A DNA stretch of 64,000 nt from Diplonema japonicum (lineage: Eukaryota; Protista; Euglenozoa: Diplonemea): NCBI GenBank assembly GCA_964019335.1, contig OZ025667.1, positions 620,001 to 684,000 of the forward strand. The letters run 5' to 3'. Each line of letters begins with the position of its first letter. The first letter of the stretch is position 1. This document shows, one piece after another, positions 46,610 to 57,401 of the stretch. A program made the translations under genes and the position numbers. The notes below the pieces were generated by a model. That model saw nothing but the letters and a program-made list of their open reading frames with translations. It was not told the DNA's origin and made no database searches.

Positions 46610-49600
46610 ATGTCAACTCTAGAAGCCATCCAGCAGAACAACACCTTAATTGTAGTGAAAGCGGGTGGCTTTGAGCTCCGTTTTCTCATCCTCACAGCTC
46701 CATCACCATCAAACCTTTCACTTTACATAAAAGTATGTAGGGAATAAAAATTAAAAAGATCGCGGACGGCAGGATTTGAACCTGCGCGGGCAGAGCCCAA
46801 TGCATTTCGAGTGCACCTCCGTAACCACTTGGATACGTCCGCTCGTGGATTTTTGCGCTTCAAAAGACCAGTACCTCATAGATGAAACCTGCAGCTGGTT
46901 GTAATTTATTTATTTTGAGGCGCGGAATTGGGCGTGGGACATGGCGTGACAAGGCGAAGGTCAAGGAGGTAAACCAACTCATGACCGAGTCGAAGCGCGC
47001 GGCCTGGGGTGAGATGGCGGCTGACCTCAGTCGGAGCAAGGACCTCGGGTCTGCGTTTAGGGCGGTGAAGAAGCTGGACGACACCGCAGACCGCACCTTC
47101 CCATTCTCGAGGGGAGGTTCGTGACGGACAAGGCGAAAGCCGACCGCCTGGGGGCTCACTTCGGCAAGCTCTACGGCCAGGGTGGTGATGGGGACGCGGC
47201 GGACGTAGCTCCTTCGACGAACGTGCTTGGGTGCCACGCCTTTACGGTGTATGATCTCACCCGCGGTCTGGGAAGGATGAAGACACGCAGTGCAGCGGGT
47301 GATGATGGCATCTTCGCGGAGATGCTTCTCCACCTCGACTAGCCCTCGCTCGGGGTTCTACTTCTGCTCCTCAATCGCTCATGGCAGGCGGGGATTGTGC
47401 CGGGTGCCTGGAAGAAGGGGGTGATTGTTCCAGTGGCGAAGGCAGGGAAGGACGCCACGTTGCTTGCATCGTACCGTCCCATATGTCTCACTAGCTGTCT
47501 TTGTAAGCTGCTTGAGAGGATGATAGAGGAGAGGCTTACCTTTCTCCTAGACTCTAGCGCGTCGGGCGTTGAGAGTCTCCACGACAGCCAGGCTGGCTTC
47601 AGGAGGGGCCGCTCCACGGAGGAGCAGGTGGCGTCCCTGACCGGGTGCCTGTCGAGGAACAAAGACAGTCGGCGTCTGTCGGCTGCCCTGCTGTTTGACT
47701 TCTCATCTGCGTTTGACCTGGTTCAGCACGAAGCTCTCTTGGGCATGATGCGGAGGAAAGGGATCCCTGAGCCCTTCGTCGAATGGACGCGCTCCTTCCT
47801 CTGCGGTCGTACGGCGGCGGTCACGGTGGGTCGTTCGCGAGGGTCGACGACGAAGGTGAGGAGAGGGGTGCCCCAAGGGTCTGTGCTGGGACCCGTCCTT
47901 TACACCATCTACGTCGACGAGCTAGCCAGGTTGCTGGTTGGGATGGCGGACCTGTCGGTTCTTTATGCCGACGATGTTGCGGTGGTGGTCTCAGCCGGGC
48001 AGGGCGACCTGGCTGGTCTTGAGCGAGGGGCCCAGGCTGTGATGGACGCGGTTGAGGGCTGGTGTGGGAGACGGGGCATGCTGCTGAGCTCCAGCAAGTC
48101 GCAGGCAGTGTGCGTTCCCTATCAGAAGCGGCTTAATGTCTACTTCTCTTCGTCGCGTGTCCCGCTTTGCCCGGGGGCCTTCCAGGACCCTGTCCTTAAT
48201 CTTGGGGTTGGGGTCTGTGGGACCTTGTCTGGCGTCCGTGAGCTGTCTGGCTTTCGGGTCGTGGAGGCGGGTGGCAAACGGTCCTTCGACATTCCCGCCG
48301 CCATCCGGAGGTCCGACATTGGTTACATGGCGGCTCGCCCCTTGCCTCTATGTGGGTCGGCGAAGTATCTTGGGGTCACTGTAGACTCTGGGCTCACGTT
48401 TGACGAGCATGCGGGGGATGTCCTGAGGAGCGCTGACAAGAGGCTGAGGGTACTAAGGCTCCTGTCGGGCACGACCTGGGGGTGCAAGAAGGCCACGCTC
48501 CGATCTCTGTACCTCACGTACGTTCTCCCGCTACTCCGGTACTGCATGGGTGTTTACTTTGCCAGGCTCAGGGACAGCAGGGTGGAGGAGCTTGTTGGGC
48601 TCCACCAGAGAGCGGCGGTGCTGATCTCGGGTTGTTGGCACGGCTCGGGCACGGCGAAGGTTGTTGCTGAGGCAGGTCTGCTACCCCTCCGACAGATGGC
48701 TGAGGGAGCTGCGGCGGTGTTGACGGCGAAGTCGTTCTGCTGGAGGACCTCCCCGGTTCACCGCGAGGTCCTTGAGCAGAAGCGGATGACCGGTATGGGC
48801 AATGGGTGGCTGCGTGCGGGTATCCTTGCGCTACGACGCTGCGGACTGCAGGGGTGGACGACGCAGGAAGGCTTCAGGAAGTACGACACCTTCGAGCTAC
48901 TGACTGCCTCGCCCAAAGTAGCACCGTGGCATGCGATCCTGGTGGAGTTCAGAACTGCCCTTCCCGGCAGGGTCACGCGTTCGTCGCCGGACGTGGATAA
49001 GCGGAAGGCGGCCGTGGAGGCTCTGGCTGCCCTTCCACCGGGTATCCATGCCTATACGGATGGTTCTGTCGTACGGGACCGCCAGAGGTGGAGGGGCGGC
49101 GCCGGGGTCTACTTGCAGCTCCCCCGCCCCCACGAACCCGTGTCCGAGAGCTTCGGCGTCAGCAATTTCTGCTCTTCCTTTCGGGCGGAGGGTCTGGCTG
49201 TCAAGGTGGCTCTGGACATGGTGGCCGCGCTCCGGAGCGAGCACCCCACGTTGGCAGACAGCCGGCTGTCGATCTGTACCGACTCGCTCTCTCTCCTTGA
49301 TCAGCTGAGGGCAGGTCCTTCGCGGCAGAGGGAGAGGCTCGACCACGAGACCTGGGAACTGCTGGTGGCCGCGGCACGTGCACAAGGTGCACCAGTCATT
49401 CTCCAGTTTGTGCCGTCCCACTGCGGGGTTCCTGGCAACGAGGCGGCAGACAGGCTGGCCGGGGAGGGCACGAAGCGCGAGCTGACTCGCCCCTCTCTCG
49501 ACTACAGGTCGGTCAGGGCCCTGGTCCGTCGCCAGATTCAGCAGAGGTCTGCGGTCATTGTCGGGGAGGTGGCCCCGAGATACGCGAGGGCCACGGGGCT

Positions 49601-52600
49601 CCGAGCGGCGTGCTTCCCCCAGTCCCTCCCCAGGCTAGCGGAGACGGTCATCTCGCGGCTGAGGGTAGGGCACTCCGCTCTCTTCTTCGGCTTCCTGCAG
49701 GCGGCTGGACCGAACAGGAAGAAGGCTGAGCTCAGCTGTCCAGCGTGTGGAGCACAGATGTCCAGGGAGCACGTTGTTGGGGGGTGCGCTGTGGTTGGAC
49801 GGGGTTCGCTCGACGCTCCCAATGGACGCCCCTCGCTGGTGGAGTGCCTGTCAAAACGCGTGACGCAGGTATTCACCCTCATCGCCGACTCTGGCTTGCT
49901 TGACTGGGCCAGATCCGGGGTCTTCACGTCGCCGTCTGCGGCAACGGCAGGTACCGCTGCCCCTTCGTTCATCCCGCCGGCTGTCTCCCTTGACGCCGGC
50001 CCTGCGGCCCCCGTGTTGCGCTGAAGTGAGTAGGGTGAGATCAACATTTCAATTCTTTTAGTGCTTACGTTCCCTTCCCCTCTCTTCCACTCCCTCTCAT
50101 CCTTTTCTTTATCATCATCCGGCGTCTGGCCTTTCTCTTACCAGTATGCCCGTCCCCTTTTAAACTTTTAAATTTTTAAAATTAACATCCTCTTGTTATC
50201 GTGTGCCCTGACATTGTAGTCAAAAACGGATGGCCCGGCCTACTCTGAAGTTGCCCAGATGAGTCCTCTCATCTTCGCACGAACGAGTGTGGTACGGCCA
50301 TCCCCTCCCCCCGCCTGCCGGAGTGCAGCGGGGAGAGCAAATACTTCCCCTATCATCCCCATGCGCACACGCACACTCGCTTCCCCTTTTGATTTTGAGA
50401 GATTTTACTCTCACCCTTTCATGTTTCGCTCAATGGAGCAAATCCCTCTCGAGGGGGCGACCGGGGCCAGTTCCGGTCACCAGAGGTCCCAGTTGAGAAA
50501 AACGACGAACTGGGGTCAAGGTCCCCGTCCGAGTCACGTAGGTCTACGCGGCTTGGAATTAAAGTAATTCAGCCCTCTTCGGCTGTTCCAAACAGGTGCA
50601 CGGGTTGGCGGAGTCCACAGCTCCATCTGATTGCAGAAGAACTGGTCTTCGCCCTCCCTGTAATATTTCCATGCTTCCCTTCACCTTTCCCCTTCCCAGG
50701 TGTTGCTCCCCCATGGTGGCACCTATTGGTATTTTGAAGAAAAAAAAAAATTGGGCGCCAACGATTCTAAAGCTACAGTTTCTGTACTTTATTGGGAAGG
50801 CTTAAAAAAAAAAAAAAAAAAAAAAAAAATGTCAAGTGACAAAATGACGAAGCCGAGCAAGGCGGGCGCCTCCAAGGGGCCCCTACCGGACGGGAGCGAG
50901 CCCGACCAAGACCCGCCGCAGCTAGTGCTGCAAACCACCGAGGTGGTGATCAGAAAGACCCCCCCCGAGACGACCCCCAAGACGAAGCCCACCCGGAAGC
51001 ACTACGACGCAGTCGTAGCCCCGCTTGCCCCCAAGCCCACGTGGGCGGCCTTCATTGCGCAGGCTGGACTGGGGAAGTCGATGAGGTTCGACGGTGTCCT
51101 AGGCACCATCGTAACCACAGGGACTCCCCCTCTTCAGTCCTACTCAGTGAGGGACGGAGACACTACCCATAAGGTGGTGTTCGAGGAGCAGAAGGGATCC
51201 TTTAAAAGGAAACTACCGGGTGGGTCTCGTAGAGGGACCAAAATAGACTTCCGCAGGGAGTTCGGGGGGGCGAGCTGGTCGCAGGTGTGGGAGCTGGCCG
51301 ACGAGAAGGAGGGGAGGAAGAAGAAGGCGAGAGAGGAGAAGGGGGCCAAAGCCGCAAAAAGGAAGGCCGAGGCCAGGGAAAGAGAGGAGAAGCTGGAGGC
51401 GAGGATCCAGGCGCTGGAGAGCGCCGAGAAGGAAGAGGGAGGCGGGATGGAGGACGACTGGGGCTGGAGGGAAGCCATGGACAGGCGGATTGCCGAGTTG
51501 GAGCAGGCGAGGGAACAGGCCGGGCTGTGGGAGAAGGCGTGCGAGAGGAAGGTGGAAGAGGTGGAGATGAGAAGGGTGCGTACGGACGAGAGGACTGAGG
51601 AGCTGAACAGGAGGGTGGGCCTGGTGGAGGGCGAGCTTGGTGGCCTGAGGGGGGAGATTTCTTCCTTGAAGGCGTCATCGGAGAGGACGGAGCGGTCGGT
51701 GGAGGAGCTGAAGCAAGGGATGAACAGATTACTCATCCACTTGACTACAGGAGCCCCCCCACCAGGAACCTCCGAGGAGGCAGACGGGTCCCCAGAACAG
51801 AGGGGACACGTGCCGTCCACCGATGGCGCTGACGAGGGGACTGACACCCCAGACTGCCCCAGGCACGCTGCGACACCGGAGAGAAAGGGTACCGTAGCAC
51901 CTTTATGCTACGACACCCCCCCACCAGCCGAAAGGCTCGTAGGAGTTGCCACAACAAGGCAGACAACCCTACACACCACCCCCTCGCAGACAACGCCCCT
52001 GCACAAGGTGAACCCTCCCGTAAAAAGGAAGGTTGAAGGCCAGTACTAAGGGCCGTGCAATCTCATTCAACACCCCTTTCACCCCCTTTCCCACACCGTC
52101 TCTCACTCCCTGTCCCTACTCCCAAACCCCCAACACTACACCCCATCTAAACGAAGATGAAGTACTACCCAGCCTCTCAAGCCCTGGAAGCTGGGGTGAC
52201 CGCAAAGGCAGCACATCATCACCACATCACCATCCCTCATCTTTCCCTCTCTCCACGCACAATTCCTCCCCAAACAAGCACTCACAAACTCCCGTCACCG
52301 GTGACGAAGTATTACCCAGTATCCAAAGGCCTGGACCTAGGGGTGACCACACAGGCAATCTTCACATTCGCAGAAATCCCGCAGCCAGCGGTCCGCACGG
52401 AAAACACTTACTGAGCTGCGGGGACATAGAAGCGAACCCCGGTCCAACCACCGAAAAGACAACAAGAGTTGAACACTCTCTCCCTCCCGTCCCCTCTACT
52501 TCCTCTCTCTCACAGGCACACTCCAACACAGCACCACCACCCAACAACATCAACGTACTGTCTCTCAATGTCAGATCCCTAACGGTGAGCACCACAGCGC

Positions 52601-55600
52601 AGCTGCTGAAGGGCATTGAGACACACAACATCGACGTGCTCCTACTCCAAGAGACTTTCCTGAGGCCGTCGAAAGATATAACCGGAGTCTTCACTGGGTT
52701 CAAGGCATACCGCCGAGACCGAACACGACCGGTGAAAAGAGGAAAGCAAATCAGCGGAGGGGGTCTCGTCACACTGGTCAGAGAATCGATACCGTCGAAA
52801 CAGATCGAAGTTCTTCAGAAACCCAGCGACGTGACGGAAAGACTCGACGTAGAGATCTCGCTGCCCAACCGGAAGCCGTACAGACTCGTCAACCTGTACC
52901 TGCCTCCGACAACGGGTAGAGACGGCGACGACAGACCACCCCCCGAGAAATATTTCCGCCCGGCAGAGCTGCCTCATGACAGTTACACCATCATCGCCGG
53001 TGACATGAACGCCCACCACACGATGTGGGACAAAAGGGGCACTCCGAATAAGCTGGGAGAAATACTGCACAGCTGGATGCTGCGATGGGGCTACAGCACA
53101 TGGAACAAGAGCAGCGAAGCCACGATCCTGAACCCGTCAGGAAACCCAACCTCTCCGGACATGGTAATGAGCGGCGCAGAGTTCGACAAATCTTCTTGGA
53201 GGACGTTGCCAGCAATGGGCTCAGACCACGTTCCGATGTTCTTCAGTCTGAGAGGGGGAGTCAGCCAACCGACCAGAAGAGTACTCTACTCTTGGGGGAA
53301 GGAGGCAAGGAGCGCGTACAGGGAGACGATGGAAGAAAAGTGCAGCAGGCTGCTCAGGGCCAGAGACCCGATAAGGCTAAACGCTGAGTTTCGCACACTT
53401 CTTCTATCGGCAACCGAATCGTGCGTCCCCAGGAAAGGACAGAAGAAAGGGAAGGTTTGGTGGAACGACGAGATTGACGCACTCGCAAGGCGACGAAGCA
53501 CACTGAAGGCGAAGCTGTTGTCCGAGGATCACGACGGGAACGACGAAGACCTGGCACGTCTAGCGGCGATGGAGGCTGAGCTGGACAGGGCGATAACGAG
53601 CGGGAAGCAGGCTGCCTGGGGCGACTACACCAAGAAGTTGTCCAAGGACGGAAACCTGACGCAAGCCTTCTCGGTCATCCGCAGATTCGACGGTCGCAGC
53701 GAGAAGCCACCAATAGCCCCGCTCCGACGAGGAAACGGTATCGCCACCACCGACAGGGAGAAGGCCAGTGTACTCGTCGAACACTACGCGAGGGCCTGCT
53801 CCCCAAGGACGACTGCCAAGTCGGAGGAAGTGATCACCACCATCAAGAAGGACGCGAAGCCCGGGACAGACAACGACTTCCCCCTGGTAACGAAGGACGA
53901 GCTGGACTCGGTGCTGCGAAGGCTGAAGAAGGGCAAGGCTCCGGGCCCAGACGGCATCTACAACGAAATGCTGAAGTACCTGGGACCGGTGGCCAGGGAA
54001 GTTCAACTCCTCCTCTACAACTCATCCCTCCAGACCGGTGTCGTCCCTGCCGAATGGAGGCGGTCTTCCATCATCCCCCTCATGAAAAAGGGCAAAGACC
54101 AATCCGAACCCGCCTCGTACAGGCCGATCGCGCTGACGTCAAACATCGTGAAGACGTTGGAGCGAATAGTCAAGGACAGGATGTGCTTCCTGCAGGACAC
54201 AGGACGGGTAAGGCAATTGCACACATCGCAGGCGGGTTTCCGGAAAGGGAGGTCCACGGAGGAAAACGTGCTGTACGCCGCCTCAAAGCTCAAAAGTGTC
54301 AGACTGAGCCAAGGTCTGGGGGGTCTCCTGCTGTTCGACTTCAAAGGAGCCTTCGACACAGTCTGGCACAAGGGAGTGATCGCAAAGCTGATAGGCGACG
54401 GATACCCTCCCAAGCTCGTGAAATGGATCACCTCTTTCCTCGACCAACGTAAAGCCTCCGTCTGTGTGAACGGGGAACACGGCTGCGTGAAGACAATGAC
54501 AGGGGGCGTACCCCAAGGCACCATCCTGGCCCCGCAGCTCTTTTCCATCTACGTCAACGACCTGGCCAGGTTGTACAGGAAGGCTGGAATCGACGCGGTA
54601 GTGTACGCAGACGACATAGCGATAGTGCTGGAGGCGGGGAGTCCTGCCGAGCTGAACAAGAAGGTGCAACGCGCGGTGAGCCTCACGGAGCGATGGTGCG
54701 AGACGTTCTCGATGAAACTGTCCCAGGAAAAGACAGAGTTCATGCCGGTGGAGGGACAGTTCTGGAACTCGCACGACAGTCTCGCAAACCTCATCAACGC
54801 CCGCTTCCCCTCGAGTGGGGCGAAAGTCAAGGTGGTACGCGAGGCTAAATATCTTGGCGTCACCTTCGACGAAAGCATGAACTTCCACGAGCATGTGCAG
54901 AAGGTGAAGGGAAAGATCAACAGCCGTCTTCGCCTGCTGCGCAAACTCGCCGGAACAAGGTGGGGCTGCCGCAAGCACACCCTAAGGACGCTGTACCTGA
55001 CGTACGTCCAACCGGTTCTGCGCTACTGTCTCGGTGCTTACGGCAACTTCGTGGGACATGCTGCTCTGGCCGAGTTCGACTCGCTACAATACACAGCAGC
55101 GAGGTTGATAACGGGATGCTTCGACAAGACTTCCGCGACGGTGACCAGGTCAGAGGCGGGCATCTGGGAGATTGAATCCTTGCTGGAACACGACACCCTG
55201 GTGCTCTACGAGAAGGCACAGCGTCAACCGGGGACGACAGCGGAGAAGGCAACAAAGATATCCGGGGGTCAGATGTGGTACGGGAAAAGCTGGCGAAACA
55301 CCGCGCTCGACTTGGCGAAGAGTCACGGGATGCCGGAACGCGAAGACCTACCACACCACTCAGTCACTCAGAGCGCAGACCTGCAGCTCCCTCCATGGGT
55401 CCAACCCAAAGTCCTGTTCCACCCCGACCTAGTCCGCAAGGTACACAAGAAGGACGAAAAAAGTCTCAAACTCCGAGCGGCCTTCGAATCGATCAGGAGG
55501 CACGGCATCCCAGATGTGATCGTCTACACCGACGGGTCAGTCACCGGACACAGGAACGGCGGTTCGGCAGCTGTGATAAGGATCGGGTCTGACACACCGA

Positions 55601-56403
55601 AGCAGGCTCGCAAGAGCGGAGGAGCAGTGACTTCGGCCTACCGATGCGAACTGAAAGCGCTGAACCTGGGGCTGCAATGGACACTGTACCATACCCGGAG
55701 ACAAGGTGTGACGACCGGAGTAGTGCTGCTGTGCTCGGACTCCCAGTCGGTGATCAGAAGACTGATGCAGGGCCACAGAGAGATGAGGCAGAAGGAGGAA
55801 CTGCTGGCTTGGAAATGGCTGGACGCGCTTGACCGCCAAGGCCTCTCCACCATCATCCAGTACGTTCCCGGACACTGCGGCCTACCAGGTAACGAGCAAG
55901 CCGACCGACACGCCAAACGCGCCGCAAAGGAGTCGACACCGGACGGACCGACGGACCTGATGACCACAAAGAGCCTCATCAAGAGGTCGGTGAACCGCGA
56001 CTGGGCAGCCTCGTGGGAGAAGACGGGTCGGGACAAGAAGTACCGAGAGGAGATCGGCGCGAGGTACCTCCCCTTGAAGGAACTGTCCTGCAGACACGAT
56101 GAGGTACAGATAACGAGACTGCGAACGGGCAGGAGCCACCTGACTTGCGGTTTCCTGTCGAAACCCGTCCAGAATGACTTACGTTGCCTCTCGTGCCATT
56201 CGATCCAGGACAGACACCATCTGCTGATCGGGTGCCCAGCTGGAGACAAGGTCCGCGAAGAGATCTTCGGGGATGACATCCCCACGACCACGAAGGAGAT
56301 GCTCACAATGAGGGTGAGTGAAACCGCCTCCTACCTGAAGAGGATGGACCTCATCTGAGACTCTCACGACCGCCGAGCCGCTGACCGCAATCGCAGGACG
56401 TAG

Positions 56404-56442
<39 letters not shown>

Positions 56443-57401
56443 AACAGAAAAAAGTGAACCAAAAAGTACTAGTGAACCCTCTCCCCCTCCCCCTGTGTTT
56501 CCCATTATTACCCTGTCGTGCACCCCAACTTCTGTCTTCACCTTTCCCCGCCCCTTCACACATCCCCCCGTATCATTTCCCTTTGTTTTGAATTTTCTAA
56601 GGCTCCGCCGCCCAACAAAGCTGGCTGAAGGGGATGCCTCCGTGCCAGTGTGCCGCTCGTGAGGGCGAGCACGGACGAGGTACCCCACTCCTCAAAAACC
56701 CGGAGGTTCGCCCGAAGGGTGCTGGCTTGGGAAGCGGGCTGGAGAGCTGCCGGGGTCACGGAGGTGGGCGAAGTCGCGAACACTGGAGCCCACGAACCGG
56801 CCCCACCTCCGTCCTCGGTACGTATGGATAGTTTAGCGGAAGTTTCAAGGTTATCACATTCCTTTCCTTTCCCCCTTTCGTTAGATACAGGGAGACCCTT
56901 GGTCCACCTGTTCTGTCCCCCCCCCCAGCCTTTGCTTCGCACGTCAGTGGTTCATTTATTATTATTTATTATTATTAAAATTGGGCGTGGGATCGATCGT
57001 GGTCTAGTTGGTTAGCGCATGGGGAAGCCTTCTAGTAGCGTCGGTTCAATTCTCCCAGCAGCCCGTTAGGCTAAGGCCGTCTCTGGAACAACTACCATGT
57101 CGGCGTGGGGCTGAACAACGCAGGCCGGACCTGAAGCGAAGTCGATATGGAAGCTGCTGGAAAAAAAAAAAAAATTGGGCGTGTAGCGGACGTATCCAAG
57201 CGGTTAAGGAGGTGCACTCGAAATGCATTGGGCTCTGCCCGCGCAGGTTCAAATCCTGCCGTCCGCGGTTTTTTTTTCTTCTGTTTTTTCTTTCTTCCAC
57301 TTCTGCAGGATTTGAAACGACATGGTGTTCAATCGCTTGTTCGCGTCTGTGCTCCGACATACAAGGAAGAAGTCGTGCGGAATCATGGCATTGAGGTTTA
57401 T
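46610..57401 (+). CDS. PRL/PTP4A-type protein tyrosine phosphatase, exons 1-2 (remaining exons beyond window)
   Basis: Exon 1 46610-46732 (MSTLE...RFLILTAPSPSNLSLYIK), donor GTATGT, acceptor CTGCAG, exon 2 57309-57401 (DLKRHGVQSLVRVCAPTYKEEVVRNHGIEVY), donor GTATGT at 57402. Matches PRL RFLIT..P....L..FIEELKKYGVTTIVRVCEATY. Confidence 0.85.
46761..46842 (-). tRNA. tRNA-Ser(CGA)
   Basis: Acceptor stem GCGGACG/CGTCCGC with G73, anticodon arm GTGCA-CTCGAAA-TGCAT, long variable arm, GGTTCAAATCC and a downstream T-run. Confidence 0.95.
46949..50750 (+). mobile_element. 5'-truncated non-LTR retrotransposon, family A (RT-RNase H-CCHC)
   Basis: YRPICL, QGSVLGP, YADD, YLGV, RNase H YTDGS/CTDS/HCGVPGNEAAD and CPAC..H...C. 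About 700-bp 3' UTR with poly(A); bounded by AATTGGGCG. Confidence 0.93.
50758..50794 (+). other. Retrotransposed spliced-leader (SL) exon relic
   Basis: CCAACGATTCTAAAGCTACAGTTTCTGTACTTTATTG contains the euglenozoan SL core ACAGTTTCTGTACT(T/A)TATTG. It is not followed by a GT donor. Confidence 0.9.
50829..52049 (+). CDS. Family B ORF1 (coiled-coil protein)
   Basis: ATG after an A-run about 35 nt downstream of the SL; long E/K/R heptad region. Confidence 0.75.
   Translation: MSSDKMTKPSKAGASKGPLPDGSEPDQDPPQLVLQTTEVVIRKTPPETTPKTKPTRKHYDAVVAPLAPKPTWAAFIAQAGLGKSMRFDGVLGTIVTTGTPPLQSYSVRDGDTTHKVVFEEQKGSFKRKLPGGSRRGTKIDFRREFGGASWSQVWELADEKEGRKKKAREEKGAKAAKRKAEAREREEKLEARIQALESAEKEEGGGMEDDWGWREAMDRRIAELEQAREQAGLWEKACERKVEEVEMRRVRTDERTEELNRRVGLVEGELGGLRGEISSLKASSERTERSVEELKQGMNRLLIHLTTGAPPPGTSEEADGSPEQRGHVPSTDGADEGTDTPDCPRHAATPERKGTVAPLCYDTPPPAERLVGVATTRQTTLHTTPSQTTPLHKVNPPVKRKVEGQY
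52033..56358 (+). CDS. Family B ORF2 polyprotein: 2A peptide, APE endonuclease, RT, RNase H, CCHC
   Basis: GDIEANPGP; SLNVRSL, LQET, GDMNAH and SDH; QGTILAP and YADD; YTDGS, CSDS and HCGLPGNEQAD; CLSC..HLLIGC. Uninterrupted for 1441 codons; real start unknown. Confidence 0.93.
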   Translation: MKASTKGRAISFNTPFTPFPTPSLTPCPYSQTPNTTPHLNEDEVLPSLSSPGSWGDRKGSTSSPHHHPSSFPLSTHNSSPNKHSQTPVTGDEVLPSIQRPGPRGDHTGNLHIRRNPAASGPHGKHLLSCGDIEANPGPTTEKTTRVEHSLPPVPSTSSLSQAHSNTAPPPNNINVLSLNVRSLTVSTTAQLLKGIETHNIDVLLLQETFLRPSKDITGVFTGFKAYRRDRTRPVKRGKQISGGGLVTLVRESIPSKQIEVLQKPSDVTERLDVEISLPNRKPYRLVNLYLPPTTGRDGDDRPPPEKYFRPAELPHDSYTIIAGDMNAHHTMWDKRGTPNKLGEILHSWMLRWGYSTWNKSSEATILNPSGNPTSPDMVMSGAEFDKSSWRTLPAMGSDHVPMFFSLRGGVSQPTRRVLYSWGKEARSAYRETMEEKCSRLLRARDPIRLNAEFRTLLLSATESCVPRKGQKKGKVWWNDEIDALARRRSTLKAKLLSEDHDGNDEDLARLAAMEAELDRAITSGKQAAWGDYTKKLSKDGNLTQAFSVIRRFDGRSEKPPIAPLRRGNGIATTDREKASVLVEHYARACSPRTTAKSEEVITTIKKDAKPGTDNDFPLVTKDELDSVLRRLKKGKAPGPDGIYNEMLKYLGPVAREVQLLLYNSSLQTGVVPAEWRRSSIIPLMKKGKDQSEPASYRPIALTSNIVKTLERIVKDRMCFLQDTGRVRQLHTSQAGFRKGRSTEENVLYAASKLKSVRLSQGLGGLLLFDFKGAFDTVWHKGVIAKLIGDGYPPKLVKWITSFLDQRKASVCVNGEHGCVKTMTGGVPQGTILAPQLFSIYVNDLARLYRKAGIDAVVYADDIAIVLEAGSPAELNKKVQRAVSLTERWCETFSMKLSQEKTEFMPVEGQFWNSHDSLANLINARFPSSGAKVKVVREAKYLGVTFDESMNFHEHVQKVKGKINSRLRLLRKLAGTRWGCRKHTLRTLYLTYVQPVLRYCLGAYGNFVGHAALAEFDSLQYTAARLITGCFDKTSATVTRSEAGIWEIESLLEHDTLVLYEKAQRQPGTTAEKATKISGGQMWYGKSWRNTALDLAKSHGMPEREDLPHHSVTQSADLQLPPWVQPKVLFHPDLVRKVHKKDEKSLKLRAAFESIRRHGIPDVIVYTDGSVTGHRNGGSAAVIRIGSDTPKQARKSGGAVTSAYRCELKALNLGLQWTLYHTRRQGVTTGVVLLCSDSQSVIRRLMQGHREMRQKEELLAWKWLDALDRQGLSTIIQYVPGHCGLPGNEQADRHAKRAAKESTPDGPTDLMTTKSLIKRSVNRDWAASWEKTGRDKKYREEIGARYLPLKELSCRHDEVQITRLRTGRSHLTCGFLSKPVQNDLRCLSCHSIQDRHHLLIGCPAGDKVREEIFGDDIPTTTKEMLTMRVSETASYLKRMDLI
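56990..57174 (+). mobile_element. tRNA-derived SINE
   Basis: A box TGGTCTAGTTGG, B box GGTTCAATTC, no closable cloverleaf, body enclosed by CCAGCAGC/GCTGCTGG, poly(A) and flanking direct repeat AATTGGGCGTG. Confidence 0.8.
57186..57267 (+). tRNA. tRNA-Ser(CGA)
   Basis: Same cloverleaf as 46761-46842 with 2 differences in the D arm; T-run terminator follows. Confidence 0.95.

Follow-up and report, generated by a model that had tools for sequence, protein, structure and literature searches.

The retrotransposon studied here, a 6.2-kb LINE at positions 50758-~56979 of the analysed window (the whole 64-kb stretch of Diplonema japonicum DNA), begins with a copy of the host's spliced leader (SL), and the RNA from which it was made was, with a probability of about 0.8 judged from the sequence, an SL trans-spliced LINE mRNA. 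Positions 50758-50794 of the (+) strand, which read CCAACGATTCTAAAGCTACAGTTTCTGTACTTTATTG, are identical at 37/37 nucleotides to nt 3-39 of the genome's own 39-nt SL exon. The earlier note had taken this stretch for a diplonemid SL lacking its first two nucleotides, which the comparison with the true SL RNA genes bears out; the 'small differences' it had seen were those between this species and the SL of Diplonema papillatum. The relic is cut at the exact end of the SL exon and continues into the LINE 5' UTR GGAAGGCTT (50795-50803), without the SL intron GTACCCAATC, and is followed by 25 A (50804-50828) and the ATG of ORF1 (50829-50831). The SL is thus joined to the LINE 5' UTR and not to the intron of an SL RNA gene, as had been proposed, and the intron has zero occurrences across the entire 64-kb window. 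The 23-nt 3' core of the SL occurs a single time in the window, where it was matched by 0/100 shuffles even at 3 mismatches, and 234 times in the 62.5-Mb genome (0 for the reversed control). The features of the locus are as follows.

50747..50757, no strand: 5' copy of the target-site duplication (up to three A's and ATTGGGCG); the same 8-11 nt recur at 56977-56987
50758..50794, + strand: SL relic, exon nt 3-39, 37/37 identity to the SL RNA gene exon
50795..50803, + strand: GGAAGGCTT, nt 6-14 of the element's 5' end (GGTAG followed by GGAAGGCTT); SL-less copies begin GGTAGGGAAGGCT
50804..50828, + strand: run of 25 A, the remainder of the 5' UTR; present in all copies, with 15-40 A
50829..52049, + strand: ORF1, 406 aa, intact
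52033..56358, + strand: ORF2, 1441 aa, intact, with AP endonuclease, reverse transcriptase and RNase H (Pfam PF03372/PF14529, PF00078, PF00075)
56359..56979, + strand: 3' UTR; an A-run (56405-56440) and a pyrimidine-rich stretch lie inside it, and an (ATT)n-AAA tail closes it; other full copies continue past the A-run with the same sequence
56977..56987, no strand: 3' copy of the target-site duplication, directly after the element tail
57186..57267, + strand: tRNA-Ser(CGA) gene, context and not part of the element, a few bases 3' of the reused target

The relic is enclosed by the target-site duplication ATTGGGCG (plus up to three A's), and the SL begins directly after the upstream copy, as the earlier note had described; ATTGGGCG stands upstream of the SL and again after the tail of the element. 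Because the relic lies between the two target copies, the SL belongs to the inserted cDNA. The element had been thought to end at the A-run 56405-56440. This end was rejected, since the same 540 nt continue beyond the A-run in other copies, and the true end was placed at ~56979, with the second ATTGGGCG following at 56980-56987. The 3' flank of the insertion in the window consists of the duplicated target and then a tRNA-like repeat, and a third ATTGGGCG is present at 57174-57181, beside tRNA-Ser(CGA). The 5' target copy (50747..50757) lies where the A-tail of an older retroelement ends. The element targets A-rich sites that often lie directly upstream of tRNA genes, and the flanks are made up of retroelement tails and tRNA genes.

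With ORF1 and ORF2, an A-rich 3' tail, variable 5' truncation and target duplications, the element is an APE-type non-LTR retrotransposon with RNase H (I/ingi-like). The start of ORF2 overlaps the end of ORF1 (52033 versus 52049); the encoded protein carries the Exo_endo_phos (APE) domain at its N-terminus and RNase H at its C-terminus. The same domain set is found in its relatives, of which the transcriptome protein P0001 is the closest, at 47% identity. The 5' UTR of the element comprises only 14 nt and the A-run. An Rfam E-value scan of 50300-57400 detected no ribozyme, and no known RNA at the 5' end; this is a weak test, and Rfam covers such ribozymes incompletely.

To identify the SL RNA genes of the species, the loci that contain the SL core were compared. 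In 9 loci the core is joined to GTACCCAATCTGATCC, and at least 4 of these (C4, two on C15, C51) have a conserved upstream block in common. Their exon is AACCAACGATTCTAAAGCTACAGTTTCTGTACTTTATTG, 39 nt long, starting with AACCAACGATTCTAAAG and ending with TATTG; the intron starts with GTACCCAATCTG, is ~100 nt long and has a T-run at its end. The predicted fold of the SL RNA consists of stem-loops around a single-stranded U-rich stretch (z = -3.75). The loci with the upstream block, the 39-nt exon and the intron ending in a T-run are SL RNA genes. An abundant form in which the SL is followed by GTCGTYYGTGTT was rejected as an SL RNA gene, as its upstream flanks differ and its copies lie at contig ends; the true genes were told from it by the common promoter block and the GTACCCAATC intron. 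The relic matches the exon of the species' SL RNA genes over all of its 37 nt, which disposes of the concern that the stretch might not be this species' SL. SL RNA genes of environmental diplonemids have the same exon. A metagenome scan with the SL core retrieved mainly metatranscriptome contigs headed by the SL, together with SL RNA genes from other diplonemids; the 80 metagenome SL-core loci examined included no LINE transcript. In public Logan contigs, whose kind of library is unspecified, SL words were ~1600-fold deeper than the LINE body in run X2. This excess hints that some of the runs are RNA, a hint on which the reading given here does not lean; the comparison covered the sequence outside the A-run stretch 50806-50839, across which SL and ORF1 are therefore not bridged.

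About 30 copies of the family retain the 3' region, with 96-100% identity. The set with a complete 5' end contains 11 copies, ten of which reach the start of ORF1 while the eleventh (C52) is rearranged after ~305 nt. The SL is present in 5 of the 11, with three different junctions.

SL joined to GGAAGGCT: the window copy (SL from nt 3), C51 (from nt 2) and C52 (A-run upstream, start ambiguous)
SL joined to GTAGGGAAGGCT: C17 (SL from nt 2)
SL joined to TGGGGG and GGTAGGGAAGGCT, with a 14-nt SL fragment (SL nt 7-20) upstream: C44
No SL, GGTAGGGAAGGCT directly after the A-rich target duplication: five copies, most clearly C74, with AAAAAATAAA on both sides
No SL, truncated within the A-run: one copy

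The insertion at C17, from SL to tail, has the 10-nt ACCACGGCGG on both sides. The four full-length SL copies that were compared agree at 99.5-99.8%, and three of them have both ORFs intact; the window copy is very recent. The SL copies do not form a clade. Over the first 2 kb, where shared variants were compared, C17 and the SL-less C74 copy have four variants and the same A-run signature in common, and one variant is common to the window copy and the SL-less C51b copy. These variants show independent acquisition of the SL in different sublineages. The possibility that the window insertion was a one-off is contradicted by the five SL-bearing ends and by the presence of the SL in a second LINE family.

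The interpretable junctions coincide with AG sites. Between the upstream tail and the ATG, the five SL-less copies contain only three AGs, which precede nt +2, +6 and +11 of the element, and the two interpretable types of SL junction lie at exactly +2 (C17) and +6 (window, C51, C52). These candidate acceptors are the first and second AG after the pyrimidine-/U-rich tail of the upstream retroelement, which at C74 is another copy of the same LINE family. The window copy lacks the first 5 nt of the element, GGTAG, which end in the AG taken to be the acceptor; SL-bearing copies are without the AG they would have used, and trans-splicing at +6 removes it. An A-run separates the polypyrimidine tract from the proposed acceptors, and the acceptor rules applied are assumed from kinetoplastids and not from diplonemids. 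The C17 junction is ambiguous by one G and can be read either as the SL followed by GTAGGG or as the SL minus its last G followed by GGTAGGG. At C44 six additional nucleotides, TGGGGG, stand at the junction; they have no extant source and look like template jumping or untemplated addition, as does the SL fragment, and the two show that such events also occur at these 5' junctions. Since the relic in the window is exact to the exon end, lies inside the target duplication and is joined at a position preceded by an AG in sister copies without the SL, a trans-spliced LINE mRNA very probably served as the template, in agreement with the earlier proposal.

A template switch, in which the reverse transcriptase copies an SL-less LINE RNA and jumps onto the 3' end of the free SL exon (the intermediate of the first splicing step) or onto another SL-bearing RNA, is an unlikely source of the relic. 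Template jumping does occur in this genome: C30:484543 consists of a complete SL RNA, unspliced and still with its intron, joined to the 5' end of another element, and is a genuine template-switch product, unlike the SL heads of the window family. At C44 the SL[7-20] fragment before the SL and the additional nucleotides before a complete GGTAGGG terminus would also suit a jump, and the C17 junction is readable as a full element end joined via 1-nt microhomology. However, all five junctions fall at the last base of the exon, although the full SL RNA is expected to be available as an acceptor far more often than the short-lived free exon. GGAAGG follows the SL three times at one post-AG position, and a jump would need the same 5-nt truncation each time. 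SL junctions at AGs are likewise found in a parent/retrocopy pair and in tandem relics elsewhere in the genome. The SL head resembles the U6-L1 template-switch chimeras, in which a small nuclear RNA is fused upstream of the 5' part of a LINE; there the small RNA is complete including its 3' end, whereas here the SL part stops at the exon boundary, without intron, and the junctions lie at AGs.

It is improbable that an ancestral element captured the SL a single time and that later copies inherited it as a fixed 5' module whose transcription starts at an internal promoter. The identical junction of the SL to GGAAGGCT in three copies could be explained in this way, and inheritance may exist elsewhere in the genome, where two other families have the SL-end TG on 13/13 and 7/7 copies. 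The family in the window, by contrast, has three different SL junctions, its SL and SL-less copies are interleaved by shared variants, the relic begins with SL nt 3 in the window copy but with nt 2 in C51 and C17, and no subfamily is defined by the SL. Elements that insert specifically into SL RNA genes have precedent in trypanosomatids and nematodes (SLACS, CZAR, CRE and NeSL type), and this general precedent is what speaks for the SL of the window LINE being target DNA. That origin is barely credible here and was rejected: the SL lies inside the duplicated target and so within the insert, the SL intron is nowhere in the window, no SL gene promoter block is found upstream of the relic, the endonuclease is of the APE and not the restriction-like type, and the flanks are retroelement tails and tRNA genes. 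Nor is the relic part of a disrupted SL RNA gene with its intron at the other end of the insertion, as the 3' flank is the duplicated target.

If the template was a trans-spliced mRNA, the start of each relic records where reverse transcription stopped. Of the 36 distinct SL sites whose complete sequence was read, 20 have a retro-copy beginning at SL nt 2 and 4 have one beginning at nt 3 or 4; starts at nt 1 were seen only where an A-run blurs the call or in a few subtelomeric copies. Within the window family the first SL nucleotide is C3 in the window and A2 in C51 and C17. Reverse transcription would then end 1-2 nt short of the cap, which fits a block at the cap-adjacent nucleotide, by analogy with trypanosomatids, where the first, cap-adjacent nucleotide of cap 4 is hypermodified. 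The earlier suggestion that the RNA was copied almost to the cap holds, with a stop 1-2 nt away both here and in most relics; that modified cap nucleotides are what stopped the enzyme is an extension from the trypanosomatid cap 4.

The SL is not the only means by which this family obtains a 5' end. It had been suggested that the element would rely on read-through transcription and trans-splicing; this is not supported, as 5 of the 11 copies begin exactly with GGTAGGGAAGGCT after the target duplication and a sixth, truncated in the A-run, is also SL-less. Since five copies start at their own GGTAGGGAAGGCT without an SL, another route to a defined 5' end exists, and the GGTAGGG terminus without SL implies an internal promoter or another processing step. 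Copies with this terminus are at least as common as SL-headed ones. Trans-splicing is a frequent but not the sole route to a retrotransposition-competent 5' end in the family. We speculate that the long A leader before the ATG may aid the translation of SL-less RNA. The idea that the relic supplies a pyrimidine run and that a nearby AG downstream of it might be the next acceptor found no support: re-splicing elsewhere in the genome uses AGs inside the relic SL, and neither a tandem SL relic nor a second-generation SL 5' end was present among the five SL-bearing copies of the family.

The same process has left traces in other sequences of the genome. The retrocopy C2:58503 has the SL joined to GAACCTAC, and at the partner locus C65:484426 the same GAACCTAC is preceded by AG. 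In eight tandem relic SLs the junction lies exactly behind an AG of the SL itself (ACAG in seven, AAAG in one). In a second APE-RT-RNase H family (L070), whose 5' flanks were compared via short sequence patterns, 2 of ~13 copies have an SL head, and the junction fits an A-run/G acceptor present in one SL-less copy. In the two repeat families mentioned above, the TG of the SL end stands immediately upstream on every copy found, and the full SL was confirmed in those members that were read. A subtelomeric family comprises at least 111 SL-headed copies, which point toward the contig ends. Retrocopies of intron-containing SL RNA were seen only 2 times, and most of the 234 SL-core sites are without the GTACCCAATC intron. 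It is possible, though we put it forward tentatively, that SL trans-splicing is a regular, used step of retroelement life cycles in this organism, in which the SL confers cap and translatability, is copied back into the genome and has become a standing 5' module in some families.

The proposed sequence of events would start from a source copy of the SL-less type, with an A-rich flank, GGTAGGGAAGGCTT, the A-run and the ATG. This copy would be transcribed from upstream by presumed read-through, typically through the pyrimidine-/U-rich tail of another retroelement, and the trans-spliceosome would join the 39-nt SL at the AG of GGTAG, giving the SL followed by GGAAGGCTT. The capped mRNA would be translated, and its own proteins would copy the same mRNA, presumably in cis, by target-primed reverse transcription into an A-rich site that lies directly upstream of a tRNA gene. 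The cDNA would reach SL nt 3, or nt 2 in most of the other relics, and stop just before the cap, possibly at its modified nucleotides.

Relic SLs at the head of retroposed sequences have been described for dinoflagellates (PMC3229502, PMC6050394, PMC5585692, PMC11453091), where retrogenes with such relics were interpreted as 'mRNA recycling' (Slamovits and Keeling 2008, cited after PMC3229502). As in dinoflagellates, a genomic copy of the SL exon heads the retroposed unit, the junctions are at AG acceptors, and tandem relics cut at an SL-internal AG (PMC3229502) occur, here elsewhere in the genome and with none in the window family. The tagged RNA is, however, not that of a passenger host gene but the LINE's own bicistronic mRNA, and the tag therefore reports on the life cycle of an autonomous element; the host is a euglenozoan, the SL is 39 nt long, target duplications are clear and the copies are essentially identical. 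Such a tag is known mainly from dinoflagellate genes, not from LINEs. With SLACS, CZAR, CRE and NeSL-1 the element has in common that a non-LTR retrotransposon is physically tied to SL sequence in a trans-splicing host. Those elements have a restriction-like endonuclease and insert into the SL RNA gene, leaving the remainder of the gene at the other end, whereas here the SL is inside the cDNA, the endonuclease is of the APE type and the targets are A-rich sites often upstream of tRNA genes. The distinction from SLACS/CZAR/CRE made in the earlier note is therefore upheld by the SL inside the target duplication, the lack of an SL intron in the window and the APE domain.

The L1Tc/ingi elements of trypanosomes, with their Pr77 internal promoter and HDV-like ribozyme, are likewise euglenozoan APE-RT-RNase H LINEs, and the window family resembles them in that most copies have their own defined 5' terminus. 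L1Tc-type transcripts are described as unspliced, and L1Tc RNA as not trans-spliced, in PMC8190864, whereas many copies carry the SL here; a Pr77-like or ribozyme signal was not detected, by what is a weak test. For SL-containing retrotransposon gene models of Schistosoma mansoni, the authors suspected 'trans-spliced retro-transcribed elements' (PMC5832876); their suggestion was tentative and left room for assembly chimeras, and neither target duplications nor sister copies nor an analysis of junctions accompanied it. SL-tagged retroposition goes unmentioned in the genome paper on D. papillatum (PMC10161547). In the literature searched, no report of SL-headed LINE copies or SL-tagged retroposition in Euglenozoa was found, and the SL sequence itself had no match.

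The finding bears on how autonomous LINEs make capped, translatable, full-length RNAs in a host in which mRNA caps come via the SL; the trypanosome model, L1Tc/ingi, is described as avoiding trans-splicing. The D. japonicum genome records that SL-capped LINE mRNAs probably served as templates, repeatedly and recently, beside an SL-independent route. With the SL head as a built-in tag, templates and the choice of acceptor can be traced, and the usual start at SL nt 2 gives an indirect view of the cap. If SL trans-splicing is a regular step of retroelement life cycles here, SL relics would be a genome-wide, datable record of the templates, and that start a natural read-out of the diplonemid cap. 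With near-identical copies and intact ORFs the system may be active and open to experiment, and diplonemids may offer a second lineage, besides dinoflagellates, for studying SL-tagged retroposition.

The 5' UTR of the studied APE-RT-RNase H LINE consisted essentially of an A-run of 15-40 nt directly before the ORF1 ATG (50804-50828 in the window), and this run occupied the same place in all copies. A second A-run of ∼36 nt was present within the 3' UTR (56405-56440). At L044 (G000:C16:715833, minus strand) an isolated stretch was found behind an A-run that read, in order, GGGGG, GGTAGGGAAGGCT, AGT and ATGTCAA. This stretch resembles a fragment from the 5' end of the studied LINE family plus five additional G's, and the SL-headed copy on C44 contained the same G-run.

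Copies of the studied LINE terminated 2-6 bp upstream of tRNA genes in the window and at the loci L056, L058, L059 and L061. The gene behind the window copy was for tRNA-Ser, and those behind the other copies were for Pro, Leu, Phe and Gly tRNAs. In one more flank, the sixth, the sequence appeared tRNA-like, but no tRNA gene was called. The ATTGGGCG target was used three times in the window (50750-57, 56980-87 and 57174-81), and two tRNA-Ser genes were located there.

tRNA-Ser genes in the window
57186-57267, tRNA-Ser, downstream of the studied LINE copy
46761-46842, minus strand, second tRNA-Ser(CGA)

A second LINE family (L070, G000:C3:788200-796200) had the 5' terminus GGTTAGGTGGGGGGTCTG, to which the 5' end of the studied LINE, GGTAGGGAAGG, is similar. 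Two copies of this second family were SL-headed, and its SL-less copies had 0-5 nt missing at the 5' end.

The SL also headed other repeat families of the D. japonicum genome. The TG of the SL end preceded all copies of a family starting with the SL joined to GTATCGACCGTGCC (13/13 loci, e.g., L016 and L027) and of one starting with the SL joined to GTCGCTCCCCGTGG (7/7 loci, e.g., L015), and no SL-less copies of either family were found. The C83 copy of the GTATCGACCGTGCC family adjoined a tandem relic, directly behind it. Eight such relics were detected in the genome. In seven of them a full SL directly followed the ACAG within an older SL, and in one it followed the AAAG, the same arrangement as in dinoflagellate relic SLs.

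Tandem relic SLs (contig:position)
C8:849420
C12:811877
C20:399043
C58:506924
C76:2342
C83:358325
C102:195398
C60:376461

A further family, in which the SL was joined to GTCGTYYGTGTT, comprised at least 111 copies, including those at L069 (C3:991700-999969) and L012 (C5:1-2037). Nearly all were located less than ∼10 kb from contig ends and were oriented toward the end, their 5' flanks varied between copies, and the leader continued into an ORF of ∼500 aa in which a 2OG-Fe(II) oxygenase domain was present. The contig ends carried an 8-nt repeat (last 200 nt of L069, first 300 nt of L012).

Contig-end repeat
right end, + strand, (CAAACCCG)n
left end, (GGTTTGCG)n

The C-rich strand therefore runs 5' to 3' toward the contig end, which is the opposite polarity to that of usual telomeres.

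Unspliced SL RNA had been retro-copied in its entirety at L067 (G000:C30:484543, minus strand) and L063 (C2:150582), and the gene promoter block was absent upstream of both. In one of the two, AAA connected the SL RNA copy with GGTGGTGGGGATAACATGG, the 5' end of a different repeat family, a fusion that looks like a template-switch chimera; this family was also found as the SL exon followed by G(G)TGGTGGGG.

In four marine metatranscriptome contigs (L076, L082, L127 and L108) the SL at the start was directly followed by another SL, from which the first 5-6 nt were missing. The junction, TATTG joined to ACGATTCTAAAG, did not lie at an AG. These double SLs could be a library artefact, or they could be relics of truncated retro-copies in other diplonemids.
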